Both the position numbers and the translations under genes were made by a program. A stretch of 63,377 bases of DNA, the filler included, from Lenisia limosa (taxonomy: Eukaryota > Protista > Breviatea), in assembly GCA_001655205.1 (NCBI GenBank). It is 10 parts of 10 records of this genome, joined end to end, with 100 filler letters (N's around TTAATTAATTAA, not from the genome) between each part and the next. Parts side by side here need not be neighbours in the genome. Positions count along the whole stretch, not along the records: positions 1 to 29,499 come from LPNZ01006268.1; 9 more parts are not named here. One strand, given 5' to 3'. The notes under the pieces are model-generated. The model did no database searches. It was not told where the DNA came from and worked only from the letters and a program-made list of their open reading frames with translations. Below, piece by piece: positions 119 to 25,560 of the stretch. Numbering within the stretch: the stretch's first letter is position 1; the number at the start of each line of letters is the position of its first letter.

Positions 119-2650
119 AACGAAGACGCTTCTTTCCCTGTTCTTCCATCAAACAGCGCCGTTTTCAGTGACACGCAATTCTATGTGGCAGAAAAGCATA
201 ACGAGCTAAGGGACTTCCTTATTTCAGTGGGAGGGGGCAACCAGCATTTTTTGCTCATTTTCAAATCATTACATTAATTTTACGAAAACATTTCTTTTCT
301 GATCTTTAAGGCGATTCGAAGAGGAAAGGGCAAATTGGCCTCGGACCCGGATAAATCGGATTACATTGTAACGAGATTCTGGAACCACCCGGTATGTCGA
401 TGTCTGGCATAGATGACGCTGTTTAGGATGTTGATGAGCGGGAATTGAACGGCCAAAACAAAATGATATTTGATGCAATGGTGAAGAACCCATCTGTTCG
501 TCTTGTTAGCCCACTTTGGATTTATGAATGCTTTAACGAGAATGGCATTGTAAGTCTTGCTTTGGTTGGTCGAGAGTTTTAACTCTCTTCAGGTTGATTA
601 TAAGCGTAATGTTTTACACGCACCAGCTCGTTCAGTTCTTGGGGTACCAGACTTGGCCGGAAAGGTTGGTAAACGCCAGTTGTTTGTTTTGATAGTTTTA
701 TTCCTTGTGTGCTAATTTGTGCAGGAAGTTTCTGTGACAAGGTACCTGGAGCCTCTTAGGGGGCATATCAAGCACCTTTGTAAGTACCTCCAGGCTTCAT
801 TTAAGGCTGACCTCAGGTATGAGTGGTGTACAGTTACTATTATCATAATAAAACTGCATTAACACCCCACAGAGCTTCATGTAACATTCTGGTATGCTTT
901 GAACACGCTGGGGAGAAGTACAACAAGAAGGATGATTGGGAACTTGAGGTAGGTCTTTGGTCTTCTCACTTAGTCCTAGGTTGTCAACCACCAATGGCTT
1001 GAAATGTGCTATGCAACATGGAGTCTGGTGGACTGTGTTGATTATCGCACTCCTGGAAAGTTTGAGGGAAAGTTTCTCTCATATTCTTTGATAGTCATTG
1101 GAACTTTATCCTTATTATTATAGGGATTTAGAGAACTTACAGTTCCCCCCGTATTGGGAACAGATTTCAGATATTGAGGCCCAAAAAAGGGAAAAGAAGG
1201 AGCAAAAAGCAGCAGAAGAAAAGATGAGAATAGAAAAGAAGAAAGAGGAGGCCTTAAAGAAAGAAGAGAAGAAGAAGAAGCTTGAGGAGGAGAAGAAAAA
1301 GAAAGAAGAAGAGAAGAAGAAAAAGGAGGAAGAAAGAAAGAAAAAGGAGGAAGAAAAGAAGAGGAAAGAGGAGGAGAAGAAGAAAGAAGAAGAGAAGAAG
1401 ATATTAGCGGAAGAGAAAAAGAAAAAAGAGGATGAAGAGAAGAAGAAGAAAGAGGAAGGGAAGAGGAGGAAAGAGGAAGAGTCCAGGAAGACAAAAGAGG
1501 AAGAAATGAGAAAGAAGGTGCAAGATGTCAAGAAACAACAGGAAGAGAAGATGGTGGAAGAGAAGATGGTGGAAGAGAAGACGTTGAAGCGACGAAGTGA
1601 TACTGAATCAACAAAGCCGGTAGGCATAGCGTTTCCTCATTTTGACTCTTTAGAATAAACTGTTGAAGAGCAGCTATAAATTTGTTATGTCAGCCAATTT
1701 AACAGACAAACCTCTAAGCATTAAGTTCCTTCAGCTGTTCGATGGTTAGTGCCGCAAAAAAGATTTAACCTGAATAGGAGATGGAAAGGAACCGACCCAC
1801 CTTGTCATGCTGAACTTGAAGAGAACGCAGAAACTGTTATCTGGTCTAGGTTTGCATTGGGGTTTACCTCTCTTGAGGCTTTGTGTGAGGCACAAATTAT
1901 TGGTCTTTTGTTACTAGAATTAACCTTGTCTTACTTTGGGCAGCCAAAGGAGTGTGGATTTTGAAGTGGCAATACTGGTGGGTGGGGGCTCTGAACACAA
2001 ACTAGGCAGTAATTTTCTGACCTTTTTTTTTTTAGCAAAGATTGTATAAGCAATGACACCCTTTTGGAATGTCTGAACTATGAATGGACTGGAGATGAGA
2101 TTTTCAACAACAAGGTGAGTTCCATTGATTTTTAGATCCAAACCAAAAAGCAAATTTGAAAGGCTACATGATATTGCAATGACACAATTGAACGATTGCT
2201 GACGATTGATAGGTGTGGTCAGGAGCACCGAGGTATTGGCGTCAGCAAGTTGCAAGAGGCAAACCCGCGTTTAAGGGTCTCAGAATCGCCATTCATGGCA
2301 AAACTGTACCCCCCACTGAGGTTGGCATTTTTGACAAAGAATTTGTACTACAGAAGATAGCTGACCTTTTAGTCAATGACAAAGATTATCAAGGAAGGTT
2401 GTGGGACCAATGTCAATGTGGATGATCCCGATATTGATTGGGTGATTACTCCCGGTTCAGGCGTGGCTTCTGACGTAAGCTGTTCTCTCAGCACTATTTC
2501 TGCCTTCATTTGCCCTGTTTCTCACCTCTACTCCAACAGGTCGAAAAAGAGTACCGTAGAAGGGCCATTACCATTGTCCCGGATGCCACGTTTCTCAATC
2601 TTCTTGGCCAGCCACTTCTCCCTGAATGTCAAAAACTGCTGAATAGATAA
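119..2650 (+). CDS. Multi-BRCT-domain protein (at least 4 BRCT domains, two pairs separated by a Lys/Glu-rich linker); 5' end lies before the window; multi-exon
   Basis: Hand-spliced exons give BRCT WxxxC-type signatures VSPLWIYECF (~505-535), VVNHQWLEMCYATW (~973-1025) and WILKWQYW-KDCIS (~1953-2055), then APRYWRQQ..PAFKGLRIAIHG (~2230-2310). KE-rich exon is ORF 1098..1658. Stop TAA at 2648-2650. Resembles DNA-damage scaffold families (Rtt107/Brc1/PTIP-like); orthology not established. Confidence 0.75.
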
Positions 2651-5836: not shown

Positions 5837-8800
5837 ATGAAGCTCTGGGTACTTCTTTCCCTTTTAGCCTTTTCGGTCTCGGTATTTGGAGGTGGTGGTT
5901 ATGACTGGCGGGTGAAGAGTCCGCATGCCCATTCAGGTAAGTCCTTCCTAAGTCCTCGGTTGATCCCATTCTTCTTGCTTTTTTGGAGTTACTTTCTCAC
6001 TCCCATACAGTTCGTAGTACTTTGATAAATAAACTCTTGGAATTCTATTTACAAATCCCTTATAGAGGTGATATTAATTATTGGTAGTGTGTCCAAAAAT
6101 CATGACCATTTTGTGTAGATGTGCATATCATATGATATAGCATATATATCGCCCGATATAGACTGGTACATTATACTATATACATGACATTCACATTTCA
6201 GACAATAGTCGTGTGAATTCGCATCTTGAACCAGAAGGCCTTTTTATACGGGATACAAAAAGCAAAGAAGCCCTCGTTCAAATCCTTATTGGAGGGAAAA
6301 GGTACGACTGAAGCTGTCTAACGTTTAGTATTGTTAAATACCAAAAGCTTCCTTCCGGTCATATGGGGAAGATACATGATGCTGAAACACGTGAGGTTGT
6401 ATCTCCATGTCCAGGAGACACCCACACCTTTGCCATGGAACAGCTCCTTGGAGGTTTGTACTCTTTCTTCTAATGATGCCTAGTTTTCTCTCGTCCCGAA
6501 CACCGCTACGTTATTACTTCGATACCGGACTGCTTGAAATCGTAAGGGCCCTTGGTGCTAACGTTTCAGTGCCGACAGTTTCTTCACCCTTGTCGTAACA
6601 ATGGATTTCAACGGAAATGTTGAAATTTTAAGACAAGGTCGTTCATTACGATTCATTGTGGTTGACAAGGACGGAAAGACGAGAAGCGTCTTGTACAACA
6701 ATCTTAAAGTCTATGATGCTGAAAGTTTGACACACAAATGAAGGTGATTACCGTTCAGAAACCATTCTCAAGAGTGAAATGGCAGTTGATGGCAAAAGCC
6801 TTCTTTTCAAAGTTCTCGAAGAGGGAAAACTTCCTGTTGGCCTTTACTCATTGGAACCTTCTAACTCTGTAGATCACAATAGACCCGGTTATTACCGACT
6901 CACCACACATTATCGGAAGAAAAAGCGGTACGATGAACACTCCGTTCTAATTGGAAACCAGGGTACAACGCGGAGTTTGGTGTATCAATGACAACAATCA
7001 AGCGCATTGGCCAAAATGACGTGAGTACTTAGTTTGTTATTATGTGTGACCCTTGTAGATTTTGGCAGTAGCTGCTCTCAATGATGGGGAGCAAGGTTTG
7101 ACTCATTGTTTAAAGACTTATTCTTAGATATGAACGAACCATACCATGGAACAGGAAACTTGTATCTTCTGGATAGCGTGTTCAGCACTGGCCACAACCC
7201 TCCAGGACATAACTCAGAAAACATCTGCTCCCTCTCAGATATTGAAGTCCAATATTGTCGGGCTGGATCCAATATCATGGCGGTAGGCATTGTTTTGGTC
7301 AAACTAGTCTAACAAATGTTGCAGTTGGACGATTACGATGGTGATGGAGTTGACGAGCTCTTTGTTTCCAATTCAGGTTTGCTTTGAAAAATTCTTGTCA
7401 TGATGATGCAATAAATAAGAAACATGAAACTAAGAGCCATCTAAACCATCACGTTTTGAACCGGTTCCTCTACGCTAAACAATATAGTCACAAAATCTGC
7501 CGCAATGTTTATGTCTTTGGACAACTTCAACGAGGCAATTCTCTTGGATCTGTCAGATTCTGACAGAAGCAACGCAAATGGATTTGGATGTGGGTTATTG
7601 AGACATTTATTAACAATTTAGCGAGTGCCCTTCAGGTAGACTGCACAGGAAATGGGAAGAAGGACCTTTTGGTATCCTCTCCTGCTCATTGTGGAGCTGT
7701 TTATGGCTTTGTAAGATCTGTGGAAATTGAGCATTTTTCTCATTTTAATAGGAAAATAGAGCCTATTCGAATCTTATTATTGACCAAACAACGAAAGATC
7801 CCAGTAATCATGTTTCAACAAATAGGTAAGAGTTGTCTGTCACATATGTTTCAGTATTGAGTCAGTTGTCCTGAGTGTTACCAAAACAACCAGCCTGAGT
7901 GAATTGGTATGGTGTCTCCTAACTAACATAGTAGATTATGTATATTACATGTGATACACCAAGTCAAAATACCTTCAACTGGATTGTAATGTCCCAAGAA
8001 ACAGAATCTGAAGAGTTAGCTCTTGACCATTTCACAGATGCAGATGGGAAGTGATTGATGTTTTTGAATCTCAAGCAGACTGCTCATCAGAGTTCCAGAT
8101 CTTTCCAAAGCCAATTGTTCGAATGGAAAACTCATGACGTTTTAGACTTTGTATGCTACACAGTTGTACGCTCTTGGAATAATACATGAACATACCTTCC
8201 GGTACACATCGCAAGGTAATTTATGTTAAAGAGAGATTTTTTATGTACGTCTTCACATTTTTAGATTACAAGTCTTTATCCGGCACAACTGAGATTAAAA
8301 AATTTAAACGGTTCAGCTTTGCTGACCTGATAATGTAAATAAACCAGCATTTAAGTTTACCATAAAGTGGTTCAACGGTGACGCTTACTGAACAAGAGGA
8401 GTCGAAAAGTAAAGGAATTCAAGCCAAGTTCACTTTGTGTTGGAATTTGAACAACTCACGCTTTAGCTCCAGAGTATCTTCCCTACTCTACCTACAACAA
8501 TGCGATTCTGTGTAAGCTAGGTCGACTTGTTGACACGTACAGCCTCCACAAGTTGCTACACTCGCCTCCAAGGACACGCATTAGCTGCTCTCATCACAAC
8601 AAATTACTTTCAATCTTTTGCAATCTCAGAGTAGGATACCCTCTGAATTTGACAACAACAGACCATTGCACAGAGATAGACCAAATAGCGCAGAAGAGGT
8701 TAGTGACAGAATAGTGATCAATTTCGATTTTTTGGAACCTAATTGAGCATTTCAATTTTTATCATTTTGAAAAATCATTATTAGTACAAAACTGGAACGG

Positions 8801-11800
8801 GCCAAGTTCACGTCACCAAAAACACTGGGATGAGTAGCTTTTCGAAATACCAAACGCTGAAGCCGCCAGTGTTCAACCAAGGTGAATTCTCAAATGGATA
8901 GAAATTGCTTCACAAGTCTATTAGAACACAGTGACGGTTTAGATGGACGATTCGGTTGGGCTATGACCTCCTTCGATGTCAACGGTGATGGACTCTCAGA
9001 TCTGGTAAGTCCAATGACACTCTGATACACTCTGGATGAACCCTCGTGTTATCTTTGTTCATCATTTCGACTTCATATCATACTTTGTTTTAACTAAGAT
9101 GCTGCAACCATGCTCTCACCCTTCAGTTTGTTGGAGAGCCAGGTACTCTCAAAGGAACAGTTCACTTGTTTCTGGGTACTTTCAATGGTGAAATTGAGAG
9201 TTCACCAGTGTGGAAAGCAGAAGGAGAATACGACTTTGGTGAATTTGGGTTGGCAATCATGTTACTGACTGCTAAGCACTACACTTTCTCATGCGGATAT
9301 GAACAACGATGGCGTTGAAGACATTATCATTTCAGCACCTTGGAATGCTGCCCAGTTGGCTTCTATTTGTCTAACTATACAGGTCTGCTTCAGGAACCGT
9401 CTATGTCTACTACACTCGCAATCGTGTGAGTGGATATGAACCAGCTGCCGAGCGCTACATTAACACCAAGGTTGGAAAACGCTAATGTTTTATGGTTCTA
9501 GCCCGACATTACCATTTCTGGAAGTGAATGCCCTCACAGCGGATTTGGACTGAAGCTGGCAACCGGAGACTACAACAACGATGGTTTGTCTTCTTATTCT
9601 TAAGTACAAGGTCTGTTTGATATCGCAATTTCCTCTATCAAACATCGTTTTGAAAATTGCGATAAAGAAGCTCATTCTGAGGAGTGGAAGCAGGCTGGTG
9701 GAGCTGTCTTTGTGTACAAAGGTTTGAGTACCTTTATGTTCCCATCAAATAGGGGTCAAGCACGCAGACTTGGAACTGTCAATCGTAACGCACCCTGATT
9801 TATCATACGAGAGCAATTCAATGGCCACAATTGTGTACAAGATCACAAATCACGGTCCACATTCAGTTACAGCAGCTAATGTTACTGTATGTTTTGACAA
9901 CAAGCTTCATACTTCAGTTCACAATGACACGACACTTGTCTATTGAAACCGCCGGTCACAACTGCTTCAACACCCTCAATGATGCTGGAGAGTAAGTGTC
10001 ACTGGATCTTATTGTATAGAATGGTGGGGACGTTTCAAACAGGCCCTTTGGCTATTGGGGAGGATTTTGAGCTGACAACGTCAATGATAGTCAGCAGCAA
10101 TCGGGTATTTTGATTTACTTCTTAGATCAGTCCAAATGCAGTAACAGAGCAAAGCGCATCAATTGTTGTCCAATCCGGCGACCCAGATGTTTTACCGGAG
10201 TTTGACATGGAAGACAACCACAGTCACTCCCTCGACTTCCAACTCACATTCGACAGTACTCTTGAACCAGGCTTTGTGACTCAGACGATCACAGCTGGGC
10301 AAAATGCAGAGCTTCAAGTGACTTTCTACAATCAAGGTCCGACAGTTGCAGTCAATGTTCCTTTCAAAATCGTGTATGTGAACACCATGACCGTTGTGAA
10401 AAGACCAATCTACTGTGGACCAAGTATAAAGGTAAACAGTTCAGTTTTTGTGATATCATTTAGAGCCACACTATGTACATTATCACGTGCACTATTCCAA
10501 CAGTTGCTTACAAGACCATTGTGGCTAGTAGTTTCATAGTCAGCGTGTCTCCGAGCAAGAGTGCCGGTAACCTCAGTCTGAGAACATACATTCAGTCCGT
10601 TAATACGGCGACACATGTAGGTTTTTTTGTAACTCACTTGTCTAGATAATATCGCACACTGGTGTCAAATACGCAACCGTCAAAACTACTCGTCAAAGTA
10701 ACATGGAGTTCAATCTTGTTCTTGCTAAAAATCAATTATCTGGAAAGGTATGTGTAAATCACAACGAATTGAGACTTCACAACCCCGTAACTTGATAGCA
10801 ATACCCAGCCACCGTGGAAGTGACCAATCATGGTCCAAGTTCTGCCAAATCCCTGACAACGTCACTTCAACTCGCACACCCGTTGACAGGACCTGCCATC
10901 AGCGTATGCCCACGAATATGTGACACTACAGGGCACAATTGTATCGTGTCCATCCGGTGCAACATGCTCATCAATGTCAAACGGAATTGCAGCATCGTTC
11001 AGTGAAGTTCCTGTGGACAGCACAGTTTTCATTCCATTCACCGCTTTTGCTGATGCGGCACTTGACGAACAGGTACTTAGTGCCCAAGAAATCAACCACA
11101 CAGTTGTTGAAGCATCGCATTTCCAGTTCTTGGGAACTCGGCCAATCCGATGTAACTGATTCTGACAGTGCTATCAAGCACTCATACTATCTTGTAGGCT
11201 TAGTAGCTCGTTATCTTTCAGGTAAGCGAAGCGGTTCCAAATGGGTCCAGTATTGATTCGGAAGGGATTGTGAGTATTTCAACAAGTGAAAAGGTGAGGT
11301 AACAACAATAAGTTTCATTTTTCAGGGAGTATTTTCAATCATTGTTTCCAACAAAGGACCTTCAAATGTCCATGGGTAAGGCTCACAACTCTCATTTATC
11401 AAGACTTCATGCATCAATTCAAATGTTTAAAACCATCGGCGGTGTTGAGAGCGTGCATGAATACAACCCAGTAACTTCTGATTTCGACCTCACAAAATGT
11501 ACTGGTGTTGATGGGACTGGAATGGAGTGCGCAGTGGACAACATCAACGCCAATGAAGTCAGTTCTTTGGCTGAATACTCCGTGATTATAACCACTCTAT
11601 TCTCCACAGGCATTAACAATTGGAACAATTGAGTCTGCTGCATTGACTACCGACGTGAACAGTATCCGATGCACAGTTGTCGTATCACGAATTACCCCGA
11701 GTAGGCTGTTTTTATTATGACGCTTAAGGCTTGGAAGACAGATTATATCCTGGGAGCGTTATTGAAGAATCTTCTGTTATTAAAGTTGGTTGTGGGGAGA

Positions 11801-14800
11801 GATTGAAAGATGTGCAACACGGAAGATATGATTTCATATAATATCTCTGAAAGTTCACATTTCATTAACTAGATTGGGAGAAATCTAGACATTAGCGCAT
11901 TTGTGTCTGGTCCAGCTTCAACAAACGCTGGGGAGTTATTTTTTGCAGTTGTACAGGTGAGTCATGATGGGAAGGGGGTATTGTCAAAGACTACTGTAAA
12001 CCATAAAAAGAATGATGTAGACAACTATAGAACTTTCTCCCTCTAATGTGTGATATGAGTTTTACTGGACAGATTTATGATTCTTCTAAATTGATATGCC
12101 AGGTGTCAAATAATGGTCCTACTGCCACCACAGATCTTATGTACGAAGTCTTTGCTCCCGAATCCATGATGTCTCTTGACTGGCTCGTTTTACCAGAATC
12201 TGCGTGTGTTCAAGAGGGTGAGATATACCAATTTATTCTTACGGTTCAGCCACGAAGTGGAGCTGCTCTAAGGCTTCGCTTTCTTCATTGGAGAGAATCC
12301 AAACTAGCTTCAAAGCCATCATACCAGCTGACCACGAGGGTTACAAAGATGCAGAATTCCGTGTCTCTGGAATTGATTTTAATGTGGGGACTTTTTGATT
12401 CATATTTGAACTTGTTGTAATATTCTTCATCCAAATGGTTTAGAATGACCACATTGACACCGACTTGAGCAACAACGATTTCGCGTTTATGTTCAACATT
12501 TCAAATGAAAACAATCTCTTTGTTTCATCGTCATCCTTCCCGACACCTCCAAATAAAATTGTGACTGGCAAAGTATGGACCTGTTTCTGTAACTCAAATT
12601 TAGACTTGTGAACTATCTGTTTTGGTAATGAACACCGGTCCTTCTCAAATGCCAACTGCTGGGGCTATATCATTCACACTCACAGCAGAGCAGAGCAATG
12701 TAGTTCAATTCATAAACCTTGAAGATTCATGTACTCTTACTGGTTTAAAAGTTCTTTGTCCATTCCCAAAATTGGCCCCAAACGCTCAAAATACTTTAAG
12801 ACTCAACGTTAAGTACAAATTTGAGGCGCTGGCAAAGGAGGTTGTCCCTTGTTTCTCAATAACATTGTAGTACCTTTATGAGTTTTCATTTGGCGATCTG
12901 ACGACTATTTCATCCCACATTGTTGACAACTCCGCTGATATCTCTGTGGCCACTTCAACTTACCCTGGTGGGTTACTTTAAAACCTTTGGATTGCAAGAC
13001 ACAATTTAATATTAAATACATTATAAGATGAACGACAGATTGAATTTGGTACACCCCATAGATCATGAACACAAACAAATTAATGAGCTAATATCAATAG
13101 AAACGACTGTTTTGCCTTCAGGGTTGTTCCAAGGCTACATCAGAGTTTCCAATAAAGGCCCTGCGCAACAAAACAATGTCGTTATTACGTTAGACTCTAC
13201 ACATGGTACGTGAGATAATAAGTCTTCAATGACAATATTTCTGAATCAATAAATTATGAACAAAACGTTACACGTCAGCGATTGAGCATTTGACATATTT
13301 CCTGTCATTGACCTGACTAGGAACGTTGGAAACAGCCCCAACCGGCACTTCATGCATTGGATTGATATGTACAATCCCAACCTTCATTGCTGGGTAAGGC
13401 ATCTCATCTTTTTTTACTTTTAGCCAAACGTTTATTTTCAAAATATCTGGCAACGCGCCGTCAAGCGATTCCGTAACCATTTCAATTGAAGGCACTGTGG
13501 CACACCAAAGCAACGACCCTAATACTGACAACGACAGCAGTTCGATTGTCTTGAAAACAGCGTCAGGTGCAGATTTGAGAGTTGAGGTTTGTGCTTATTG
13601 AAGTTATATACCAACAGACAAGTCTAATGATACACTTCATCTCTGATGAATTAGGTCAAAGCTGTTGTAGCCGGGGAGGCCACTGACACTGTTTTACACG
13701 GAACCGAGTTCTCAGTTTGGTCATTCGGTTTCTACTTACTCCCAGATGGCTGCTTTGAATGTCAATAATGGGCCAACTGAAACGGCTGCCAAAACTGTTC
13801 TCTTTGTTCCTGAGGTTTGTTCAATTGCTGTCTTATCAAATAGGGAATGTTTTTGGTAACGGCAGTGTCTGGATACCAGGCGTCCAATTGCCCTGCGGAT
13901 TCGAATAGTAGGTCACCTTTAGTTACACACACGCAGTGAAAACTGGATATCTTTAATCCAGTAGGTTTAACCGGCCCTAATTGTCAACTTGAATGGAGTC
14001 ACGCATCACTTAGTGTGGGATGTAGGGTAACAAGTGCAGAGGACTTGATGGGAGTTGTACTTCGCTCCATTCTCTCGATAAATATGTATAAATACATCGA
14101 TATTTCTCCGATCTTTTTTGGACCACGGTGTAACCCTAGACTTGATAATGCCAACTCTATAGGCTCAGCAATTGACGTCAGCATCTGCAGTCCTTCGGCT
14201 GCCGACTGTGTTTACGGAACCTTCATTCATTGTAAGTTGCAAGTGCAATCATGATTATGCAGGTCAAATCGCAATCGATAATTGTTGGAGATAGTGACCC
14301 CGACACATCCAACAATGTGGGGACCCGGGTTATCAACGCTGTTGCTGGTAAGTGATGCAGGCTGTTTTCATAGTCCAAGGAGCCGACCTCCTTCTGTCAA
14401 TAAGCTTCCAAGAAACGGTCAACTCAGGCACCTCTCTTCCAGTCAATGTAATCTGCTCAAATTATGGTCCTTCCACGGCCCTCTCACCCGAAGTGACACT
14501 TCACATTCCTGAAGTGATGACTTATGATGTTGAAAGCGCTTCTGTGGCAGTTTTGGTACTCAATGCTACCACTGTAGTCTTCACGTTGCCACAAATGGAG
14601 CCCTTCGACAAGGTGGTCATTTCTTTCAGCCTGGCAGTTGGTAGTGCAATTCCCACCCAAGAGCGTGAAATCACAGCCTCAATATCGGATGCCACTCTCC
14701 CTGACAACATTTTGAAGAACAACGAAGACTCTCGACCAATTATGTTTCTGGCAACAGCTGAAGTTGACATTTTCCTCAAGCTTCTTAGCACTAAGAGTAG

Positions 14801-17800
14801 CCACCTAAAGAGGGGAGAAACTGGTGTCATGGTGTTGACTGTAAAGAACAAGGGTCCAGCATTAGTGCAACATGCGGTGATAGAGTTATTATTCCCTGAC
14901 ACTAGTGTATCGTTAGGTACTGATTTGTCCGTTGTGGCCACGGAAATTCAGCCTGGAAGTGACGCGTCCTTGCAGGCAGTTGTGACAATACCCACTGACT
15001 TCAACGACAACTACATCATTTTCACAGGACGAATGGGTGCAACTGCAGTCAGCCCCAGGGTCACAGACAAGCAAACCGTCATCATCATTACAGAGAGTGA
15101 TATTACTGCAAGTATTAGAGTTGTTGATGATATGATAATGGGCGAATTAGCGCAATTTGTGATTTCTGGCGGTAACAAAGGCCCATCCACAGCGTTACAG
15201 TTGACAATAGTGATGACCATTCCTTCCGACTTGGTGTTTGAGAAGTCTTCTGGTGAGGCTGCCTGCATCCACAAAGATGGCGTGTTGACCTGTGTTGTTG
15301 CTGCACTTGAGCCGAAAAAGTCATTTGGCCAAATAGTGACAGTGGCAGTTTTGGACGCAGAAGAGCTATCGGTGAGATTGGAGATTGACTTATTTTGGAA
15401 CCATCATTATTGTGATCTACTCATAACATACTATACTCTCAACTTGTGAGGATTTTACCTGCTATTAACCCAATAGGGATCATTGTCATGCACGATCACC
15501 GCTAGCTCCCCGCTGAAGAGCCCCTTTACCGTATTCAGCACGGAATACAATGTCGTTAGGTCTGCTGACACTGCCGTCATTCCATTCTTCTCTGCAATGC
15601 TGGACATTGGTCGAAATGTTCCGTTCAGTCTTAGGGTTCTCAACATTGGGCCTTCTTCAGCTAAGAACCTTCAAGTACTAATTGAGTTTTCTAACGACTT
15701 ACAACTGACATCGGTGTTGGTAGAAGGATGCATTGTTCTTTCCAATACTGTGACTTGCCAATTGGCTGAGTTGCTGCCTCGAGAGACGAAACTACTCAGC
15801 GGTTACATGCTTGTTGCTCCAAGTCAACATGCAGTTACTTCTGACATCAGCAGCACTGTATCCAACAACAGGGACAACAACCCCTCCAATAACCAAGTTA
15901 TTTCTGGTGTTCAGTTTATTGAGACTTCTGGTTAGTCAACTTTGGTCTTATTATGTGTTTAGATATTGGAAGCAGTATATCTGTTCAGCCCAAAGTCCCC
16001 ATAATTGGAGGGGCGGCCGTTTTGACTGTTTGTTTTCTTTCGAGCTTACTTCTTTAGACTGCAGTATCAAACCTCGGCCCTCTCTCGTCAGGTGTAGTGA
16101 CAGCTTTAGTCACACTTCCGGACATTGGAAACCCAACAACGATACCTGATGAATGCACGTTGGAGTCTTCGTTACAATACAAGTTGGTTAATTACCTTGT
16201 CACTTTGTAGCTGTGTCATTGATGACATCACTTCAAATGAAAAAGTACAATTGCGGTAAGATAGATGGTTTCAACATAAACTCAAAGCCCAACTGTTTTC
16301 TCATAAGTCTAGCTTTTGGTACACAGTCAACACAGAATTGTCCGAAAACACCGCAATATCAGCTTCCGTCCTTGTGTCAGGATTGAAAAATGACCCAAAT
16401 ACTGACAACAATATGGACCTTGTCTACACCGAGCTGATTAAGGCCTCAACAGTAACAATGTTCACTTCGCTCTACCCCAGGTGAGATCCAAGTTATGATG
16501 ACAATCAAGAGTGTCTGTTCCAGTTGGAGGGTTCTTGAGAGTATCAAGTCATATCACAAACATCGGCCCTTCGTCGTGTTCATCATTTCGAGTGGAGTTT
16601 GATGAAAGCGCCTCTCTCAGGCAGTCGACAACAGAATGTGAAATGATGGAGTCGCAAGACAAGGCCAGCTGTGACTATCTTGGCTGTAACGTCACTTCGA
16701 TTGACCTTGCTCAAAACAAGGATATTTCGGTTAGTTAGTGACCGTAAATTGATTTCACAGATGGTCTGCGTGCTTTCGGTTTTGTCTGAGGCAGAAGCGG
16801 ATAAGATTGCAGCCAGAACAGCAATGGTAATAGCACTTGGTGACTGACATTGTAGTCATCCATTCATTTTGTCGGTCTTAATGGATGCAATGTTGAGTCG
16901 GACATTACAGTGTCGTTTTCAATTGAAGTGAGTTTGCAATGTTACTCACATTTTAGCTGGACAAAACTGCAGACCTTTCAGTTGGAATGTTGGCTTCGCC
17001 TACTATTTCCGGTAATCGAGTTCTGAAGAACAAAGTGACAGTTTACAACAAGGGCCCTGCAACAGCCAAATCCGTGGGTTGCATTGCCATGACTTAGCCT
17101 TTAGCCGTTTATTCTGCTTCATCCCGTCGACCTTCCTTCAAGCATGTCAAGCTGGACTGGAGCAACGGGGTGCCTTGAATTGCCCTCAGGTGACATTAAG
17201 TGCACACTCTCGGACATAGCGGTGAGTTAAGTGCACCTCTCGGACATAGCGGTAAGTTAAGTGCAGACATAGCGGTAAGTTAAGTGCACCTCTCGGACGG
17301 TGAGTTAAACCCTTCTGTCTCAAAACAGATACATAATATATGTATGCAAAATATTTCTACTGTCATGATATGAATAACAAAACATCTAAACCCCTTTCCT
17401 TATTCTGATGGCTGGACAGGCCAACGCCCGGAGTGACATTCAAGTGGGCAGACTCATGGATAAGCAACTTGGTAGTTTACCTTATGACAGAATCAATTCC
17501 ACTGTCACGGCCATGTCTCTAACTGAGGACCCAAGGTAGGCTGAAGGTCCTCTGGAGATCTCTAACCAAATAGTGGCGATCAAAACTTCGGTGTATCGTC
17601 ATCTCGAATCAGGAGGAGTGCGGATGTGCTGGTCAAGATCCGCGTTGTTCCTTTGGAAATTGCCAAGGACGGCAACTTGAAGGTTTGAACTATGACTTAC
17701 AGCTTATATTAAGACGGTGGTGACGACAACAAATAGCGGACCTGCTGACGCCCGCAACGTGGTTACTGTCATTCATCTTCCCTATTACACTGATATGGCC

Positions 17801-19635
17801 CACTTGTCCTTCTCTTACTCTAATGCCAAGTGTATTGTTGTTCAGGGAACGGTAAGCGCTGTCATAAGTCTAAGCAGCTAGACAAACATTGAGTGCACTT
17901 CAGACACCATTGAAATGCTCCAAACATCCAACGTTGTGATCAAGGTTGGGCGTGTCAATTTGGTGCATTTTTTGATTCGGCTACAGCGAACTGAGATCTT
18001 ATGATGAAGGTTAAGGCAACAGAGGAGCCCGGTGTAAACCTTGGTACATTCGACCTTACTGCCGCCACAATGGCCCTTGAAGATGACTTGAACATGGATA
18101 ACAACGCAGCTGAGGCGTCTGCCGTTATTCTGCCGGCAACTTGCGACCCTAGGGTGATCATTAATTTCAGATGCCGTATATAGACTAGTTTTTTAGTTGT
18201 TTGACTTCTCAGGTCCAATTCAGCGCCTGGCCAGTGCAGAATAAGGCAGGTAACCTCATTACATTCCAAGCTAACGTTGTCAACCCAGGCCCTTCCCCCA
18301 CTGGTTAGCATGGTTCTTGTGAGGATGTGTTGTTGAAGTCTGATGTTCAAGGTCCAATCACGACAGTCTTCTCTATCCCGGCAGAGTTCGTTGTATTGCC
18401 TCCTCCAATTGGCTGTGTTGTCTCTGGGATTTCAGGCATGGGTAGTGAAGTGGCATGTTCCCGAATTGATCTTCCACCCAAGTCTCAAGCTGACCCCTGT
18501 CAGCCCAATGAAGAAGGCTGTTGGACTGTTAACATTGAGGTTCTCTCAAATCTGTCACCATCATCACTCGGGACTCACGTTGCGGCTGTTTCAATTACTT
18601 CTGCCCTTGATTCTGACATGACCAACAACAATGGCTCATTGCTGGTGGAGTCTACGACAGATGCAGCCTTGCAGGTCACTGTTCTCCCCACACTTGGGTT
18701 CTACAGTGGTACGAATACTTCAGCGATCAGTGTAATATCTACATTGTAGCATTTGTTATTCATCGTATTTCTATGATTCACAGTTGTTGAAATTGTTGAC
18801 CATGTTACCCCACTTACCTCTTCAGGCAACTCAGACTCAGGCATAATGGTTGCGAGCAGCGACACTGACATTGCGTTTCAGTTTTCGATTCTCAACCCTG
18901 GCACGTCAGCGGCAACCGACTGCGTGCTAAAAGTGGACAGCCTCTTGCCTGAGGTAAGCCACACTCTGCTGCCTCAGGTTCTAGGGTACCTCGTATGGAG
19001 CGTTCAGCGTCAAGGCGGACATGAAGACCGCCTTCGGAAGGGAGGCCATCCATGGTCACGATGCCAAGTGCACAGTGCAAGACCTCACGCTAACCTGTGA
19101 CCTTGGCACTGTCTGGGAACAGAGTGCTGTCGCCTTTGTTCCCTCCACCGTCACGGTCACATTCTACCAAATTCAGCGGAATGACACAGTCGACTTCGAG
19201 AGCACTGTTGGTGTTAGCTCAGGGTGGCCTGAAGCTGCGGCCAACTCAACCACGAAGTTCCGGTTGGTGGCATAGTATGTCACATTGAGTGTGATGAATT
19301 TCTGTTTTGTTTTTGACAAACACAGGGTAATTGGAAAGACTGTGAGTTTGAGGAAACAAGAGATTATTGAAGAGGAAGCGGACAACACTCTCAATAGGAA
19401 TATTTCAATTGGTGGGTGTCTGTAGGTATTGACCGCTCAGCTGGTGGCTTGCTTGGACTGGCGCTGGTGGCCTTCCTTATCAAGCGGGGATTCTTCAAAA
19501 GCAAGAATCACCCTGATAACTACGATGAAGGCGAGGGTAAGCAAGCGTAACTATTCTGACCGTCAGGACTTGGGGAATTGGGCTCTCCCACCGAGCCTGA
19601 TGACGACCTTGGCTCCCCCACTCCTAACCTCACTG
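5837..19635 (+). CDS. Giant integrin-alpha-like type I membrane protein (signal peptide, N-terminal domain, FG-GAP beta-propeller, ~18 DUF11/Ig-like stalk repeats, TM, GFFK tail); last exon unresolved
   Basis: Signal peptide MKLWVLLSLLAFSVSVFG. FG-GAP/Ca-loop segments DDYDGDGVDELFV (~7328), DCTGNGKKDLLVSSP (~7639), RFGWAMTSFDVNGDGLSDL (8948-9005), FG..DMNNDGVEDIIISAP (~9295), FGLKLATGDYNNDG (~9544). Seventeen NxGP motifs plus one NPGT variant between 9847 and 18900. TM AGGLLGLALVAFLI followed by KRGFFKS at 19482-19502. Dozens of short GT-AG introns. Confidence 0.88.
17196..17308 (+). repeat. Four degenerate ~23-31-bp tandem copies of an exon-end plus 5' splice site inside the integrin gene
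   Basis: ttaagtgcac(a)ctctcggacatagcg-gt(g/a)ag repeated four times with internal deletions. Confidence 0.92.
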
Positions 19636-19786
19636 GTGAGACTTTCTTTTAGAGCCTTTCCGCTAGGTTACGATTCATGCTTACCGTTTTGTACTATTAT
19701 ATTTAATGTATTTGTTATCTTGTTCCCAGCCAATTGTACAAATACACCTGAATCCACCAACCTAAGAATAAAAATACAGAGTGGGT

Positions 19787-22700
19787 TTAGAGTCTCTTCC
19801 TCGCCAGTTCAGCGGTGTACTTGTCAGGAACACCATCCTGTAGTAACTCCTTGATCTTATCTTGGCGGAATCGCTAAATAGTAAGAAACATTAAAAGAAG
19901 ACAGAACGATATTATATCATATAATATTTTATTCTGGGATAGACTCACGAGCATTTCATTGTCGAAGCCCCCCCAAACCTCCACCTTCTCAGCGTGGATT
20001 TTCTGGTCGCGATCGAAGGATGTTGGTTGCTTTGCTAATGCACGCTCTTGACGAAGTTGTTGTTCACGTTCGTGGATTTGGTTCTTAAGGGGTAAGTAGA
20101 AAACAGGAAGGGACCAAGAAAACGTTAAAGCTTGAAAACCCTCCAACCTCTAATATTTGTTTATGGGACCTATTTCTATCAACAGTCATAGCCTGTGTTC
20201 TCTTTTCGGCTTCAATCTGCTTCTCCTAAAAAGTGAGCTCCTGAAAAGGCAACAGCACCGCCTTGTTCATACAGGGTATTGTAAAGGAAGTAAAGAATTG
20301 ACAAAGGCTCGTATTTCCATTTTGAAGGAAGCCCCCTGGCAAACCTGTGCGGCAACAACACGGTCGAACTCGTCACGCTCCATACGGGCTTGGGCTGCAA
20401 GACGAAGTTCTGCGGAGGTAAATCGCAGAACAAAGCGTGTAGTTTCCTTGGCCCAAAACAGTCCAGGAGCATTTGTTTTTATGGGCTCATGATGTTAAAA
20501 ATCCAAAAATTGCTCCCTCTTGGTATTGTCATAGCATAGGAACTATTAGGAAGAGAGCCAGCCATACCTTTGTCTCTCTTTTGGGCAGCGTTCGCCTCCA
20601 TCAAGTCAGCCTAGATGGTCGTGAATATTGGATGGTGTGGTCAAAAATTCAATTCCAGTACAATAACTATATTTTTTGAGGATTTAATGTAACATTTGAA
20701 CTTGTCGAGAGCTTAATATACAGCCAATATTGGGTAGCAACAGTTCTGACAAAAAAGGTCTGCAAAGCAACCAAACAATACCTGCCTTTTGACCTGTTTC
20801 TCAGCTTCAGCCTTCTCCTTGGCTCTGAAGTCCCGTTCTCTCTGGTCGGCCGCGCGGCGAGCTCTCAACGCGTCCCGGTCTGCCTCATGGTCACTTGTAG
20901 ACTTCTTCATCGTCATCACCTATGGTATGAAATGCGAACCAGTATAATTATAAAAAACTGGACTGAATCTTCCACAAAACGAAGTTCTCAATGAAAAGAT
21001 GAAACCTATTGTGTTGGCCACATTTTCCAAAAAATATCGTGAGCTGCATAACCAAAGGCAAGGACGAAAATTCTATGAGTGCTTTGTACCTGTTGAACAT
21101 CGTTCGCCTTTCTCTTCTTGATCATTGCTTGTTCCTCTTCATAAGCTTGTTGCCGGGATTCGCGTTCTTGGAGGTAGCGAGCAACACGACTATTCAGTAA
21201 TAAACAAAACGAGAGCATCCCAAAAAAAAGCAGAAAATAGTCATTTGAGCCACGTACAGGTCTTCCTCCTTCTCCTGCTGCTTGCGGTTCGATTTGATTT
21301 GAATTAACCGGTCGTTTTCACCCATAACTTCGTCCATCAGCGACCTAGCTGGGTGAAGAAAACATTGGGACGAGGGCAACAAACTATGAAAGAAAAATAA
21401 ATAACAGAAGAAATAAATATGGATAGAATACTTTGATATCACATGATATAGAGACAAGAACATCAAGGAACTTCCGACACGAGCTTTTACAGCGCCATAA
21501 TGATTTCTGCAATCACAGTACCTTTGCTTAGTTTTGCGCAGAGCAGCCTTTCTCTCCTCTTCATCCTTCAACAGCTGAACGGATCAGTAAATGTGCTCTG
21601 GAGACACCACCAACCTGGACGTCTCTGAGCATGGCTGCTTGCTCCTGCTCGCGCATTTCGCGTTCAACCTCACGTGCTTGGTCTGGAGTAGTGAGGACAT
21701 TGTTGGGTGAAACAATTAAGTCCATCGATCAAAAAGCATATAGCCACCCACCTCTTTCCTTGATCTGCGTCCTGATAGCGGCAGCTCCTGCCTTGAGAGT
21801 CAAGACATGCTCCTCATCCTTCTTGCGCTGGCTGGAAAGGTCAGAAATACTCAAACAGAAGGGACGTTACATTTCTGTTTCTCTCTTCTGTTTGGACAAC
21901 ATCATATCATGGGTTCGCGACTCATCCTCCTTCAGACGACGCTGGATTTCTTTCTGAAAGAAATGTGAGGGGAAGTGAAAGGGGAACCAGTGTTGAAAAA
22001 AAACTTTGATTTGTTAATTATCCTGTAAAATATCAAGAGTTACATCAACCAACCTTCTCCTTGATTTGCTTTTCGCGGATTGCGGCGCATTTGGCGTAAC
22101 TTGCCATGCTGGCTACTCTCTTGGCTTCGTCTACAGCATTAGCTTGCAAGCCTTGACAGGTACCGTTGAATATATTACAACGGGGCTGAATATCTCCATG
22201 AATTCATTAATAATAATCCTGCTATTGTACTTGTCCTGTTCACGTTACATTCCGTCCTGGGCAAAAGCCCCTCACCGGTTTCAAGAAGAAGTAGACCGTC
22301 CGCCTTCTGTTGGATGGATTTGTTACTGTGTTCGCGCTCAATTTCCTCTGAACTGTCAATTGCCGATCTAACCAGAGAGTACCAGATCCCTTCCAATCAC
22401 CCCCCCCCCCCCCCCCNNNNNNNNNNNNNNNNNNNNNNNNNNNNNNNNNNNNNNNNNNNNNNNNNNNNNNNNNNNNNNNNNNNNNNNNTTTCGGATGGCT
22501 ACGATGGTAAGTCCGGCAAATGTTAGGGTGAATTTAAGCTATCAGGATATTCACGATAACCCATGGATGTTTAAGTAAGCTTGTCCATGGAGAATGATTG
22601 GGGTTTCTTTCAGCACGAGAAGCAAACACCAACAACTGAAATTTCATTCTGTCCGGACTTGGATTCCCTTCAACAGCGTTTTATTGTGTGGTTGCAGACC

Positions 22701-23520
22701 CCCTCCCCTGCAAGAATACTCCCGAGATTTGAGGGTGGTTGGTAGGAAAGGAATGCATAACCCCCACCGGCAGTAGACTGCAGCTGGTCCTTTCGGGATG
22801 TTTCCGACATTTTCATGCGGGCTTCTCTTGAGTTGCTTGCCGGCATGCTCATGTCCTGAAGATGAGAACAACAGCCGCCGGACCAACCTTGATCTTAGCA
22901 AATTCGTTCCTTGACAGCACCACAGCATCTTTGCCTGCCTTGGCCTGAGCTTTCTGCAGGGTTGAACGAGACACGGCCGGCGCTTTGCCTGCCGAGTAAA
23001 AAAAAACCTTGCATAATTCTGAAATAAATGGGTTTCAAACGCATTTTCTTCTTTCGTTTAAGTATATCAAGGGAAGAAAGTATTAAGTTGCACTATAACG
23101 AATTTGGGCGATAGGGCTGGGGAGGACGCCTACGGGATGTTCCTGGCTTGACTGTTCCTGAAAAAAGGCTTTCATCAACTTCTGAGGAACGGCCTCTGCG
23201 GGAGAGTGAGTCAGGCCCGCAAACAAACAATTGTCTCAAAACCCAAGCCTCCATTCGCGTGTAGAACCTACTTGTAGTTTGATCTTTGTGAACGAACACT
23301 TCTTTCACTGTTTATGGAGCCTGCAACTGAGGATGCCTAGAGAGTGTGAACATAAAACCATATAGTGCAGTAACTACACATAATAAATAGTTAATATTGC
23401 TCAATTCAATAAACTAATTCAGACAAAGGCGCGTATCTCCGTTTATACAAGAGTTCCACTGAAACTGAGAAGCGTGAAATCCAATGCTTCGTCCAATATG
23501 ATATTAGCCATCAATACCAT
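19787..23520 (-). CDS. CFAP45: Cilia- and flagella-associated protein 45 (CCDC19), multi-exon
   Basis: N-terminal RSSEVDESLFSG, VVLSRNEFAKIK, DHEADRDALRARRAADQRERDFRAKEK, MERDEFDRVVAAQ and C-terminal KIKELLQDGVPDKYTAELARKRL* match CFAP45 motifs. Stop TAA 19787-19789; ATG inferred at 23520 followed directly by an intron. Confidence 0.88.
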
Positions 23521-24015
23521 GGTGAAAGCTGAAGCGTGGTTCAAAGCAAACGATTCACAAAATTAAAGGTGGGCTTAAAGTACTCTGTTGAATGTAGACT
23601 GTGCTAATTCACCGTATATTATTATATAGCTACAATATAAAGAGTTCTTTTCTTTGTAAACCTTTTGAAAATCAATTGAAAATTTTTGGGGGTTTTGAGC
23701 AGAGTACTAAAGCTATCTTAATATTTATATAAGTATACTAATATAATGAATAAGTTATTTAATTACGTAGAATAAAGCTGAAAAATTAAATAAAATTCAG
23801 TCTATATAAGTATATAATATTTATAACTCGCCAGCATTTTTTTTCGCCCTTTTTTGCCTTCATATTTCATCGCTAACCTTATATACCTTTGCTTTTTTAA
23901 AGAGAGTTTTTTGACTCTGTATGTAGGTTAGGTAGATTTACTTAAAGATTGACATTGCACTTGTTCACTTCTACTTCTCTTTCCCAAGCACTGTATATCG
24001 TGGTAACGATTCAAA

Positions 24016-25560
24016 ATGCAATATGATGAACATATCTGGAGAATCATCAACCATGGGCACTGTTCTTTTCGTGTAAAGTGAGACCACTTTCTTTTGTGTG
24101 GTCTTCTGACGCCATTTAGGACTGTAACACAAAACTTTTGCAAGAATGAGTACAATGCAACCGGTCTCTGTGGACGTAGAGCTTGTCCTCTCGCCAACTC
24201 TCGCTATGCAACAATCAAAGAACAGAATGGTATGTTGGTCCTTTGTTTGCTTTCTGCATTTAAGCGTAAATCAGTAAGTAGTATATCCCCCATTCACTGG
24301 ATAGGAAAGCTGTTTCTGCTGACCAAAGTTATTGAGAGGTCACATACCCCTTCAAAGCTGTGGGCTTACAAGAAGCTTTCTCCAAAATATGCTGATGCCC
24401 TCCAGCAAGTAAGGGTTTCATATTTAGGTGTGAACTCATTGTATAGATTACAGACGCTCTTGAGTTTTGGCCTCGATGGATGATTCGTAAGGTCAAACAG
24501 CGGCATACAAAGCTGACTGAGTATCTCATTAGACGCAAGAGGCTTCGCAAGAAGTACAAGTCGGTTTAGTTTTTATGTGAAGAGGAAAAAAATAACGTAC
24601 ATAGGCCTGAGATTGTCACAGAGTCTCGCAAAGTTGCAAAGAGACTTGCGCGCAGGGAAGAGAAGGCTCTTATCGCTGCCAATATTGAGAAGCAGATTGA
24701 AAAGGAAGTTGTTGATCGCTTGAAACAGGTCTGTTGGTCTCTGACTTTTTCAAATCCATAATCACCGTTGTAACAAACAAGGGAACCTATGGTGATATTT
24801 ACAATTTCCCGAAGCAAGCCTTCGACAGTGTCATTGAAGAACAAGAGATCGAGGTTGGTGTTATGTTCGGAATAAGACCGCTGATGAACTAGGAGGAGCA
24901 CCCTGATGAGCTTTATGATCCCGAGGCGGCTGCTGGTAAGTAGGGTTTCTAATGGGGACAGAGGAAAATGCTTTTTGTAAATAAAGCATCAATCCCAGTT
25001 TTTCTAGTGAATCCAACCAATCTGATAATCTTACGATGTAGCTGCTAGACCAGAGGGATTCGGTTCTGATGACGAGGAGTCTGGAAGTGATGTTGGCTCG
25101 GAGGAGGATTCCGACGAGGGTATTTCGGCTGAAGACTCTGATGAAGAAGGAGCTGAGGTAAGCACACGTTCCCAGTAAAAAGACTGTCCATTTTATTTAG
25201 AGAGGATACTTTGTTGATCATATTATATATTCAAAACCTCGGAGGTTGTTCTGACTTTTATAGGGTGACGAGTTCCAGTTCCCATCAGATTTGGATGATC
25301 TTGAGGATGACTCGGATTCTGAAGGCGAAATGGACGAACCGGAGCAACCACCTAAGAAGCTAAAGAAGAAGGGAAAGAAGAAGAAGAGTATGAGGGTATT
25401 TCTCCCCCCCCCCCTTTTTTTTTTTGCCTTNNNNNNNNNNAGAAGGCAGGTGAGTGTCTCCAGTCCTGGACCAAGGCCATGTTCATCTGCTCAAAGATGT
25501 CCCATGTGTCTGCAGCCCAACTCCGGTATGAGAACCGCGAGTCGTCTAAGGACAAGGTTG
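24016..25560 (+). CDS. MAK16: MAK16 ribosome biogenesis protein, multi-exon; 3' end approximate (crosses a small gap)
   Basis: [114 protein letters not shown], then an acidic/basic tail. Confidence 0.95.

Follow-up and report, generated by a model that had tools for sequence, protein, structure and literature searches.

The window analyzed here is a 63,377-nucleotide (nt) stretch of DNA from the breviate Lenisia limosa (assembly GCA_001655205.1), and its locus at 5837-19550 on the plus strand is most probably a single nuclear, intron-rich gene for a giant integrin-alpha-like type I membrane receptor. From its start codon onward it encodes a signal peptide, an FG-GAP beta-propeller head with five calcium (Ca)-type loops, a stalk of 18 tandem DUF11/CLIPPER-type immunoglobulin (Ig)-like modules, a transmembrane (TM) helix and a KRGFFKS tail. 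We place it as a new member in the family of long-legged integrin alpha chains (ITGAs) that is already known from breviates. An initial annotation of the window had listed a signal peptide, a propeller with five DxxxDG/NG-type loops, some 18 repeated stalk modules, a TM helix followed by KRGFFKS and a chain of about 3000 amino acids (aa), and all of these were recovered in the present analysis.

The window is eukaryotic DNA of about 42% G+C in which open reading frames (ORFs) are short and interrupted. The protein libraries hold no annotated protein for the gene, their only match at 100% identity being a 364-aa ORF call (P0001), and we therefore built our own exon-chaining model, using a dynamic-programming script that combines codon log-odds with learned splice-site matrices and correcting obvious errors by hand. 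The curated gene model comprises some 85 exons that encode about 3,205 aa; across six parameter settings the length ranged from 3,003 to 3,252 aa, with 8,763 nt called as coding in all six runs. Coding signal is continuous through the locus, and the 18 modules keep a regular register across 9.5 kb. Pfam, AlphaFold and homology searches were run on contiguous exon stretches.

Membrane anchor and propeller head

At the 3' end of the gene, a frame-3 stretch on the plus strand (19398-19547) reads EYFNWWVSVGIDRSAGGLLGLALVAFLIKRGFFKSKNHPDNYDEGEGKQA and ends at a TAA stop codon (19548-19550). We identify 19398-19550 as the most likely terminal exon, comprising EYFN-WWVSVGIDRSAGGLLGLALVAFLI, KRGFFKS, an acidic tail and the TAA. 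The TM segment WWVSVG...GGLLGLALVAFLI at 19410-19481 and the KRGFFKS at 19482-19502 were recognized by eye; the helix contains a GxxxG motif (GGLLG). When the 50-aa exon was compared with the Protein Data Bank (PDB), all seven matches were to TM/tail segments of integrin alpha-IIb or alpha-X, the best being alpha-IIb (2KNC) at E = 0.0021. A terminal exon starting at 19441 had been considered initially, and its 35-aa version from 19443 reached alpha-IIb as its best match only at E = 0.61. Reading the frame from 19398 adds WWVSVG, which compares with WWVLVG in alpha-IIb, and it is because the alpha-IIb match improves from 0.61 to 0.0021 that we took the longer exon. Two candidate junctions lead into it, one joining 19266 directly to 19398 and the other passing through a 16-nt exon at 19326-19341.

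At the 5' end, the start codon (ATG at 5837) and the signal peptide MKLWVLLSLLAFSVSVFG occupy 5837-5890 (+), read directly from the sequence. They are followed by an N-terminal region of about 245 modelled residues (5891-7127, +), where the exon calls are weak and of low confidence. The initial annotation had placed an extra N-terminal domain ahead of the propeller; Pfam found no domain in the exon pieces of this region, and a hidden Markov model (HMM) of the propeller blade gave one weak match near residue 233. The roughly 290 modelled residues that precede the first Ca loop could be propeller blades that lack loops.

The recognisable head begins with two FG-GAP blades carrying Ca-type loops (7128-7710, +; 398 coding nt agreed in six of six model runs), of which loop 1, DDYDGDGVDE (7331-7360), is canonical and loop 2, DCTGNGKKD (7639-7665), is degenerate. 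Three further FG-GAP blades, supported by hand-curated splice junctions, Pfam FG-GAP and the loop profile, lie at 8943-9721 (+) and carry canonical cation loops: loop 3, DVNGDGLSD, at 8975; loop 4, DMNNDGVED, at 9296; and loop 5, DYNNDG plus LFD, which is split by a 27-nt intron (9568-9583 plus 9611-9621). The integrin cation consensus D/E-h-D/N-x-D/N-G-h-x-D/E, as quoted by Kang et al. (10.1101/2020.04.29.069435), is fully fitted by four of the five loops. Pfam FG-GAP, which has a cutoff of 22.1 bits, scored 22.1 bits (E = 1.4e-4) on one exon piece and 19.2 bits (E = 1.1e-3) on another, and a profile of the five loops matched integrins alpha-IIb, alpha-5 and alpha-V in the PDB (E = 5e-4 to 5e-2, with alpha-IIb and alpha-5 at 5e-4). 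The short head exons drew nothing from Pfam, and the blade HMM revealed no blades beyond the five. Between the blade of loop 2 and that of loop 3 the model places an insert of at least about 190 aa (7711-8942, +), the exon structure of which is uncertain and the exon calls of which are again weak. No domain is recognisable in it, and the modelled sequence has no vWA-like motif, unlike the alpha-I domain of some animal integrins.

The DUF11/CLIPPER stalk

The stalk extends over 9753-19266 (+) as a tandem array of 18 modules, each about 130 aa long. This count and period came from an HMM trained on the repeats of the gene itself, and all 18 modules were likewise detected by a single-repeat HMM made only from 33 bacterial DUF11 homologues (independent E-values of 1e-13 to 9e-3). 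On the two long exons, Pfam DUF11 reached 52.4 bits (E = 7.6e-14) and 36.6 bits (E = 6.2e-9), above its gathering cutoff of 24.6. The genomic spans, all on the plus strand and approximate, are 9764-10230 (module 1), 10261-10678 (2), 10718-11133 (3), 11252-11733 (4), 12024-12479 (5), 12528-12879 (6), 13091-13568 (7), 13569-14183 (8), 14382-14753 (9), 14763-15080 (10), 15096-15563 (11), 15564-15923 (12), 15927-16445 (13), 16511-16867 (14), 16969-17613 (15), 17620-18138 (16), 18145-18662 (17) and 18837-19266 (18), where the end of module 18 depends on the terminal junction used. The longest exon (14374-15371, +) is an open frame that contains modules 9 and 10 and most of module 11, and it served as the query for the database search and the structure model.

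Mean identity is 18% among the 18 modules and 21% between a module and the bacterial repeats, and adjacent modules are not more alike than distant ones; judged by their sequences, the modules are old. An N-x-G-P-S motif, a D-P-x-x-x-N-N motif and a pair of cysteines have been kept. DUF11 has been renamed CLIPPER and carries a Lys-Asp-Asn isopeptide bond (PMC12617251), with the triad present in many, not all, members of the family. At the aligned columns, the complete triad occurs in none of the 18 modules, and the bacterial repeats have the Lys in 25, the Asp in 29 and the Asn in 30 of 33 cases.

An AlphaFold model of modules 9-11, computed from a 34-row alignment, is confident (predicted local distance difference test, pLDDT, of 89.9) and displays the CnaA-like/E-set beta-sandwich fold of DUF11/CLIPPER. 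With this three-module model as query, Foldseek ranked integrin alpha chains first (E = 3e-12), and in VIA-align the three modules overlay residues 440-909 of alpha-V, that is thigh, calf-1 and calf-2, with Z = 14.8. We rejected the specific integrin kinship that the Foldseek rank might suggest, as single domains score nearly as high in VIA-align when compared with one module: CARDB (3IDU) at Z = 13.8 and CLIPPER (9IFR) at Z = 12.9, with a root-mean-square deviation of 2.3 A over 115 residues. These values indicate that the modelled fold is the general E-set sandwich of integrin legs and prokaryotic stalk domains alike, and the model thus provides no evidence for a specific integrin relationship of the stalk.

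Searches with the stalk sequence found no full-length relative among the 150 matches listed, and a JGI metagenome scan found no close relatives. Against PDB sequences, phmmer returned nothing for the stalk, and the module profile gave non-significant matches only, including the 'NQGPSS' of integrin alpha-5 calf-2 at E = 1.2. The bacterial DUF11 proteins P0008 and P0093 reach summed scores of 40-69 bits against Integrin_A_Ig_3 (calf-2) through the shared N-x-G-P-S region, with no single stretch passing; such a cross-match between DUF11 and calf-2 is general and not special to this gene. P0093 has nine DUF11 repeats followed by 13 FG-GAP_3 repeats, which is the reversed domain order.

We propose that the signal peptide would direct the protein to the cell surface, where the FG-GAP head, with its four canonical loops and one degenerate Ca2+ loop, would bind a ligand and/or a beta subunit. 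The 18 divergent modules could form a rod of an estimated 70-80 nm, assuming about 4 nm per Ig domain, and the GxxxG of the TM helix together with KRGFFKS would clasp the TM/tail of a similarly long-legged beta chain, leaving a short acidic tail beyond. Such a receptor might function in adhesion or in contact with prey or substrate.

Gene structure, expression and alternative explanations

The model predicts about 85 introns, of which about half measure 28-32 nt. This short class comprises 40 to 45 introns under every parameter setting, including runs with no length penalty, and forms a sharp mode against the flat length distribution of background GT..AG pairs. The predicted introns begin with GTNNG and have a CTAAC/CTCAC-like, branch-like motif 6-9 nt before the YAG, and identical signals (GTNNG and the branch-like motif) are carried by the RNA-proven introns of a neighbouring gene. 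A stringent tiny-intron pattern occurs 13 times within the gene on the plus strand and once on the minus strand, compared to a mean of 1.6 in shuffled sequence. As to length, 13 of the 14 RNA-proven introns extracted from the adjacent gene measure 39-177 nt and one measures 32 nt; the 28-32 nt introns thus resemble a gene-specific tiny-intron class, for which we offer no explanation. The ENA assembly ERZ3820729 contains a contig (NODE_182) that is collinear with the window and identical to it across the gene, the sole difference being a 1-nt indel outside the gene at 22399; this contig probably derives from the same reads as the assembly of the window.

Several observations weigh against an integrin alpha. 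Only five propeller blades are recognisable, compared to the seven of the integrin alpha propeller, and the head model is probably too short: its first two motifs lie 280 aa apart, whereas Kang et al. (Suppl. Table 1) give positions that differ by 418 aa in the Pygsuia ITGA and by 391 aa in that of Lenisia, which suggests that about 110 aa are missing from 7711-8942. In sequence, the stalk has prokaryotic proteins as its nearest relatives throughout. The Pfam families for integrin legs (Integrin_A_Ig_1-3 / IPR013649) were not reached in the stalk (Integrin_A_Ig_3 at E = 0.019-0.14, below cutoff, a cross-hit that bacterial DUF11 proteins give as well), and the fit of a single CARDB or CLIPPER domain to one module is nearly as good as that of the entire integrin leg to three. 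K-R-G-F-F-K-S ends in a Ser where GFFKR has the Arg that, in animals, pairs with the beta tail, so that the strict KxGFFxR is missed. The initial annotation had described a true integrin-alpha anchor joined to an architecture typical of bacterial FG-GAP/DUF11 surface proteins; this structural reading is supported (Pfam DUF11 and FG-GAP, and the TM/tail match). Of the two sequencing runs found, X1 is DNA and X2, which comes from the same study, is polyA RNA; X2 yielded no contig over 13700-19699, with both neighbouring genes covered at a depth of 61-77. All splice junctions of the integrin-like gene are therefore predictions.

Part of this evidence would fit a fibrillar adhesin that acts independently of a beta subunit, namely an FG-GAP and DUF11 protein from bacteria or archaea that turned intron-rich and whose TM/GFFK anchor works on its own. 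Among the matches listed for the stalk query, all 149 non-self hits look bacterial (23-31% identity), the closest ESM Atlas clusters consist throughout of DUF11 proteins from bacteria or archaea, bacteria combine DUF11 with FG-GAP, as in P0093, and the missing terminal Arg of the tail would be in keeping with an anchor of this type. However, the PDB matches of the TM/tail are to integrin alpha only, and a GFFK tail is present in none of those 149 prokaryotic matches. The module identities (21% to bacterial repeats, 18% among the modules) imply, moreover, that any transfer was ancient, and Pygsuia, whose alpha chain shows this same architecture, possesses a long ITGB as well (1793 aa with 34 EGF repeats; Kang et al.). 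We consider such an adhesin unlikely.

The RNA data could alternatively reflect a silent or decaying copy, be it a pseudogene or an unexpressed paralogue, since both neighbours are well covered in the polyA run. However, all 18 modules remain in frame and in register across the predicted introns, and the signal peptide, Ca loops, Cys pairs and TM/tail are intact. The ITGA of Pygsuia is itself expressed at 2.14 transcripts per million (TPM) only (Kang et al., Suppl. Table 3), which makes absence from one small RNA contig set weak evidence against function, and we regard a silent copy as very unlikely. With no transcript spanning the locus and with weak exon models at 5891-7127 and 7711-8942, two or more adjacent genes might also have been fused in our reading, such as one for a secreted FG-GAP protein and another for a DUF11 membrane protein. 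This is barely credible, as only a 31-nt intron (9722-9752) lies between the last blade and module 1, non-coding gaps in the model measure 166 nt at most, the locus shows no internal start codon followed by a signal peptide, and the published breviate ITGAs, which were assembled from transcriptomes, have the same full-length architecture. A single gene for an integrin-alpha-like receptor thus remains the reading that we favor.

Downstream, the gene faces an expressed neighbour on the minus strand (19755-23655), represented by a 1713-nt RNA contig at a depth of 77 with at least 15 CT..AC joints (introns). This convergent transcript contig extends to 19755, which lies some 200 nt downstream of the stop codon of the integrin-like gene, and therefore leaves limited space for additional 3' exons. 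It is followed by an expressed MAK16-like ribosome-biogenesis gene (23907-25387, +; RNA contig of 1085 nt at a depth of 61), the product of which has an acidic, Lys-rich C-terminus. Elsewhere in the window, a purine-rich stretch at 1000-2000 (+) has a GC skew of 0.41 and an AT skew of 0.32, with low-complexity ORFs overlapping on both strands, and an Rfam search gave zero matches.

Significance and comparison with known systems

These findings leave unchanged the accepted view that, within Amorphea, the integrin machinery is older than the animals. What they add is the number of modules, 18, the lack of a complete isopeptide triad, a modelled fold for the leg, the variant GFFKS tail and an unusual gene structure with tiny introns. 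They also show at the genomic level, with some 85 introns and a delimited 3' end, a long-legged integrin alpha of a kind known previously mainly from transcriptome-derived entries in supplementary tables. That 18 DUF11-type modules devoid of isopeptide chemistry would overlay animal integrin legs, as the three modelled ones do, bears on the origin of these legs. It is possible, though on balance doubtful, that the breviate-type alpha represents the ancestral state, in which case integrin alpha would have arisen from a prokaryotic FG-GAP and DUF11/CLIPPER adhesin, the metazoan thigh and calf domains would be three surviving, diverged modules, and the locus would be a genuine eukaryotic DUF11/CLIPPER array. 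A recent survey of CLIPPER treated eukaryotic matches as likely contamination (PMC12617251). The array described here would run against this view: genuine eukaryotic genes do contain DUF11/CLIPPER domains.

Among known systems, the stramenopile Pirsonia diadema has integrin-like FG-GAP/EGF proteins (PMC13524835) that are similar in being FG-GAP surface proteins of a flagellate, of large size (up to 2,680 aa) and encoded with introns. They differ in combining FG-GAP_3 with EGF and other domains and often several TM helices, with a DUF11 stalk or GFFK tail not reported. The prokaryotic DUF11/CLIPPER fibrillar adhesins (PF01345; 9IFR; PMC12617251) share with the Lenisia gene the tandem modules of 110-130 aa, the N-x-G-P-S and D-P-x-x-x-N-N motifs, the Cys pair, the 9IFR fold and a stalk role behind an N-terminal binding head. 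Unlike them, the gene is eukaryotic and intron-rich, it has the complete isopeptide triad in none of its modules, whereas each triad residue is found in 25-30 of the 33 bacterial repeats, and it ends in an integrin-type TM/tail in place of LPXTG, PEP-CTERM, type IX secretion system (T9SS) or OmpA sorting signals.

With the metazoan integrin alpha chains (alpha-IIb, alpha-V and alpha-5), the gene has in common FG-GAP blades with D-x-D/N-x-D/N-G-x-x-D loops, legs of tandem E-set beta-sandwiches that the modelled modules overlay, a TM helix with WWV.VG and GxxxG, K-x-G-F-F-K by the membrane and a short acidic tail. It differs from them in having 18 leg modules instead of three, in that these modules score as DUF11 and not as Integrin_A_Ig_1-3, in the insert of at least about 190 aa between blades together with a fifth loop motif, and in the Ser that replaces the terminal Arg of GFFKR.

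The closest counterparts are the ITGAs of breviates. The initial annotation knew of no described equivalent, and this claim fails because near-identical giant architectures are already described in Suppl. Table 1 of Kang et al., which lists a Pygsuia biforma ITGA of 3312 aa ('DUF11 4 repeats (CTE)', GFFKR, TM) and a Lenisia limosa ITGA, 'LenisMan47', of 3346 aa ('Ig fold like 11 repeats', GFFKR, no TM listed), as well as an ITGA of 2114 aa from Thecamonas trahens. In their discussion, breviate ITGA and ITGB are both long-legged, and for the breviate long-legged ITGA Kang et al. cite Brown et al. (2013). Our gene is possibly a re-sighting of a published ITGA. It differs from the Pygsuia and Lenisia entries in its GFFKS, in place of GFFKR, in the 18 modules counted here against the four DUF11 (Pygsuia) or 11 Ig-like repeats (Lenisia) given by InterProScan, and in a model that is 100-340 aa shorter, as compared by published table entries. 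Like them, it combines a length of about 3,300 aa in the published chains, which our model approaches, with cation motifs in an FG-GAP head, an extended array of DUF11 or Ig-like repeats towards the C-terminus and a tail with GFFK(R), and it shares low expression with the ITGA of Pygsuia. The spacing of the propeller motifs is similar as well: Ca loops 3 and 5 lie 128 aa apart in our model, and the last two motifs listed in Suppl. Table 1 of Kang et al. are separated by 122 aa in the Pygsuia chain and by 125 aa in that of Lenisia. Motif spacing further suggests that the insert at 7711-8942 is also present in both of these ITGAs.

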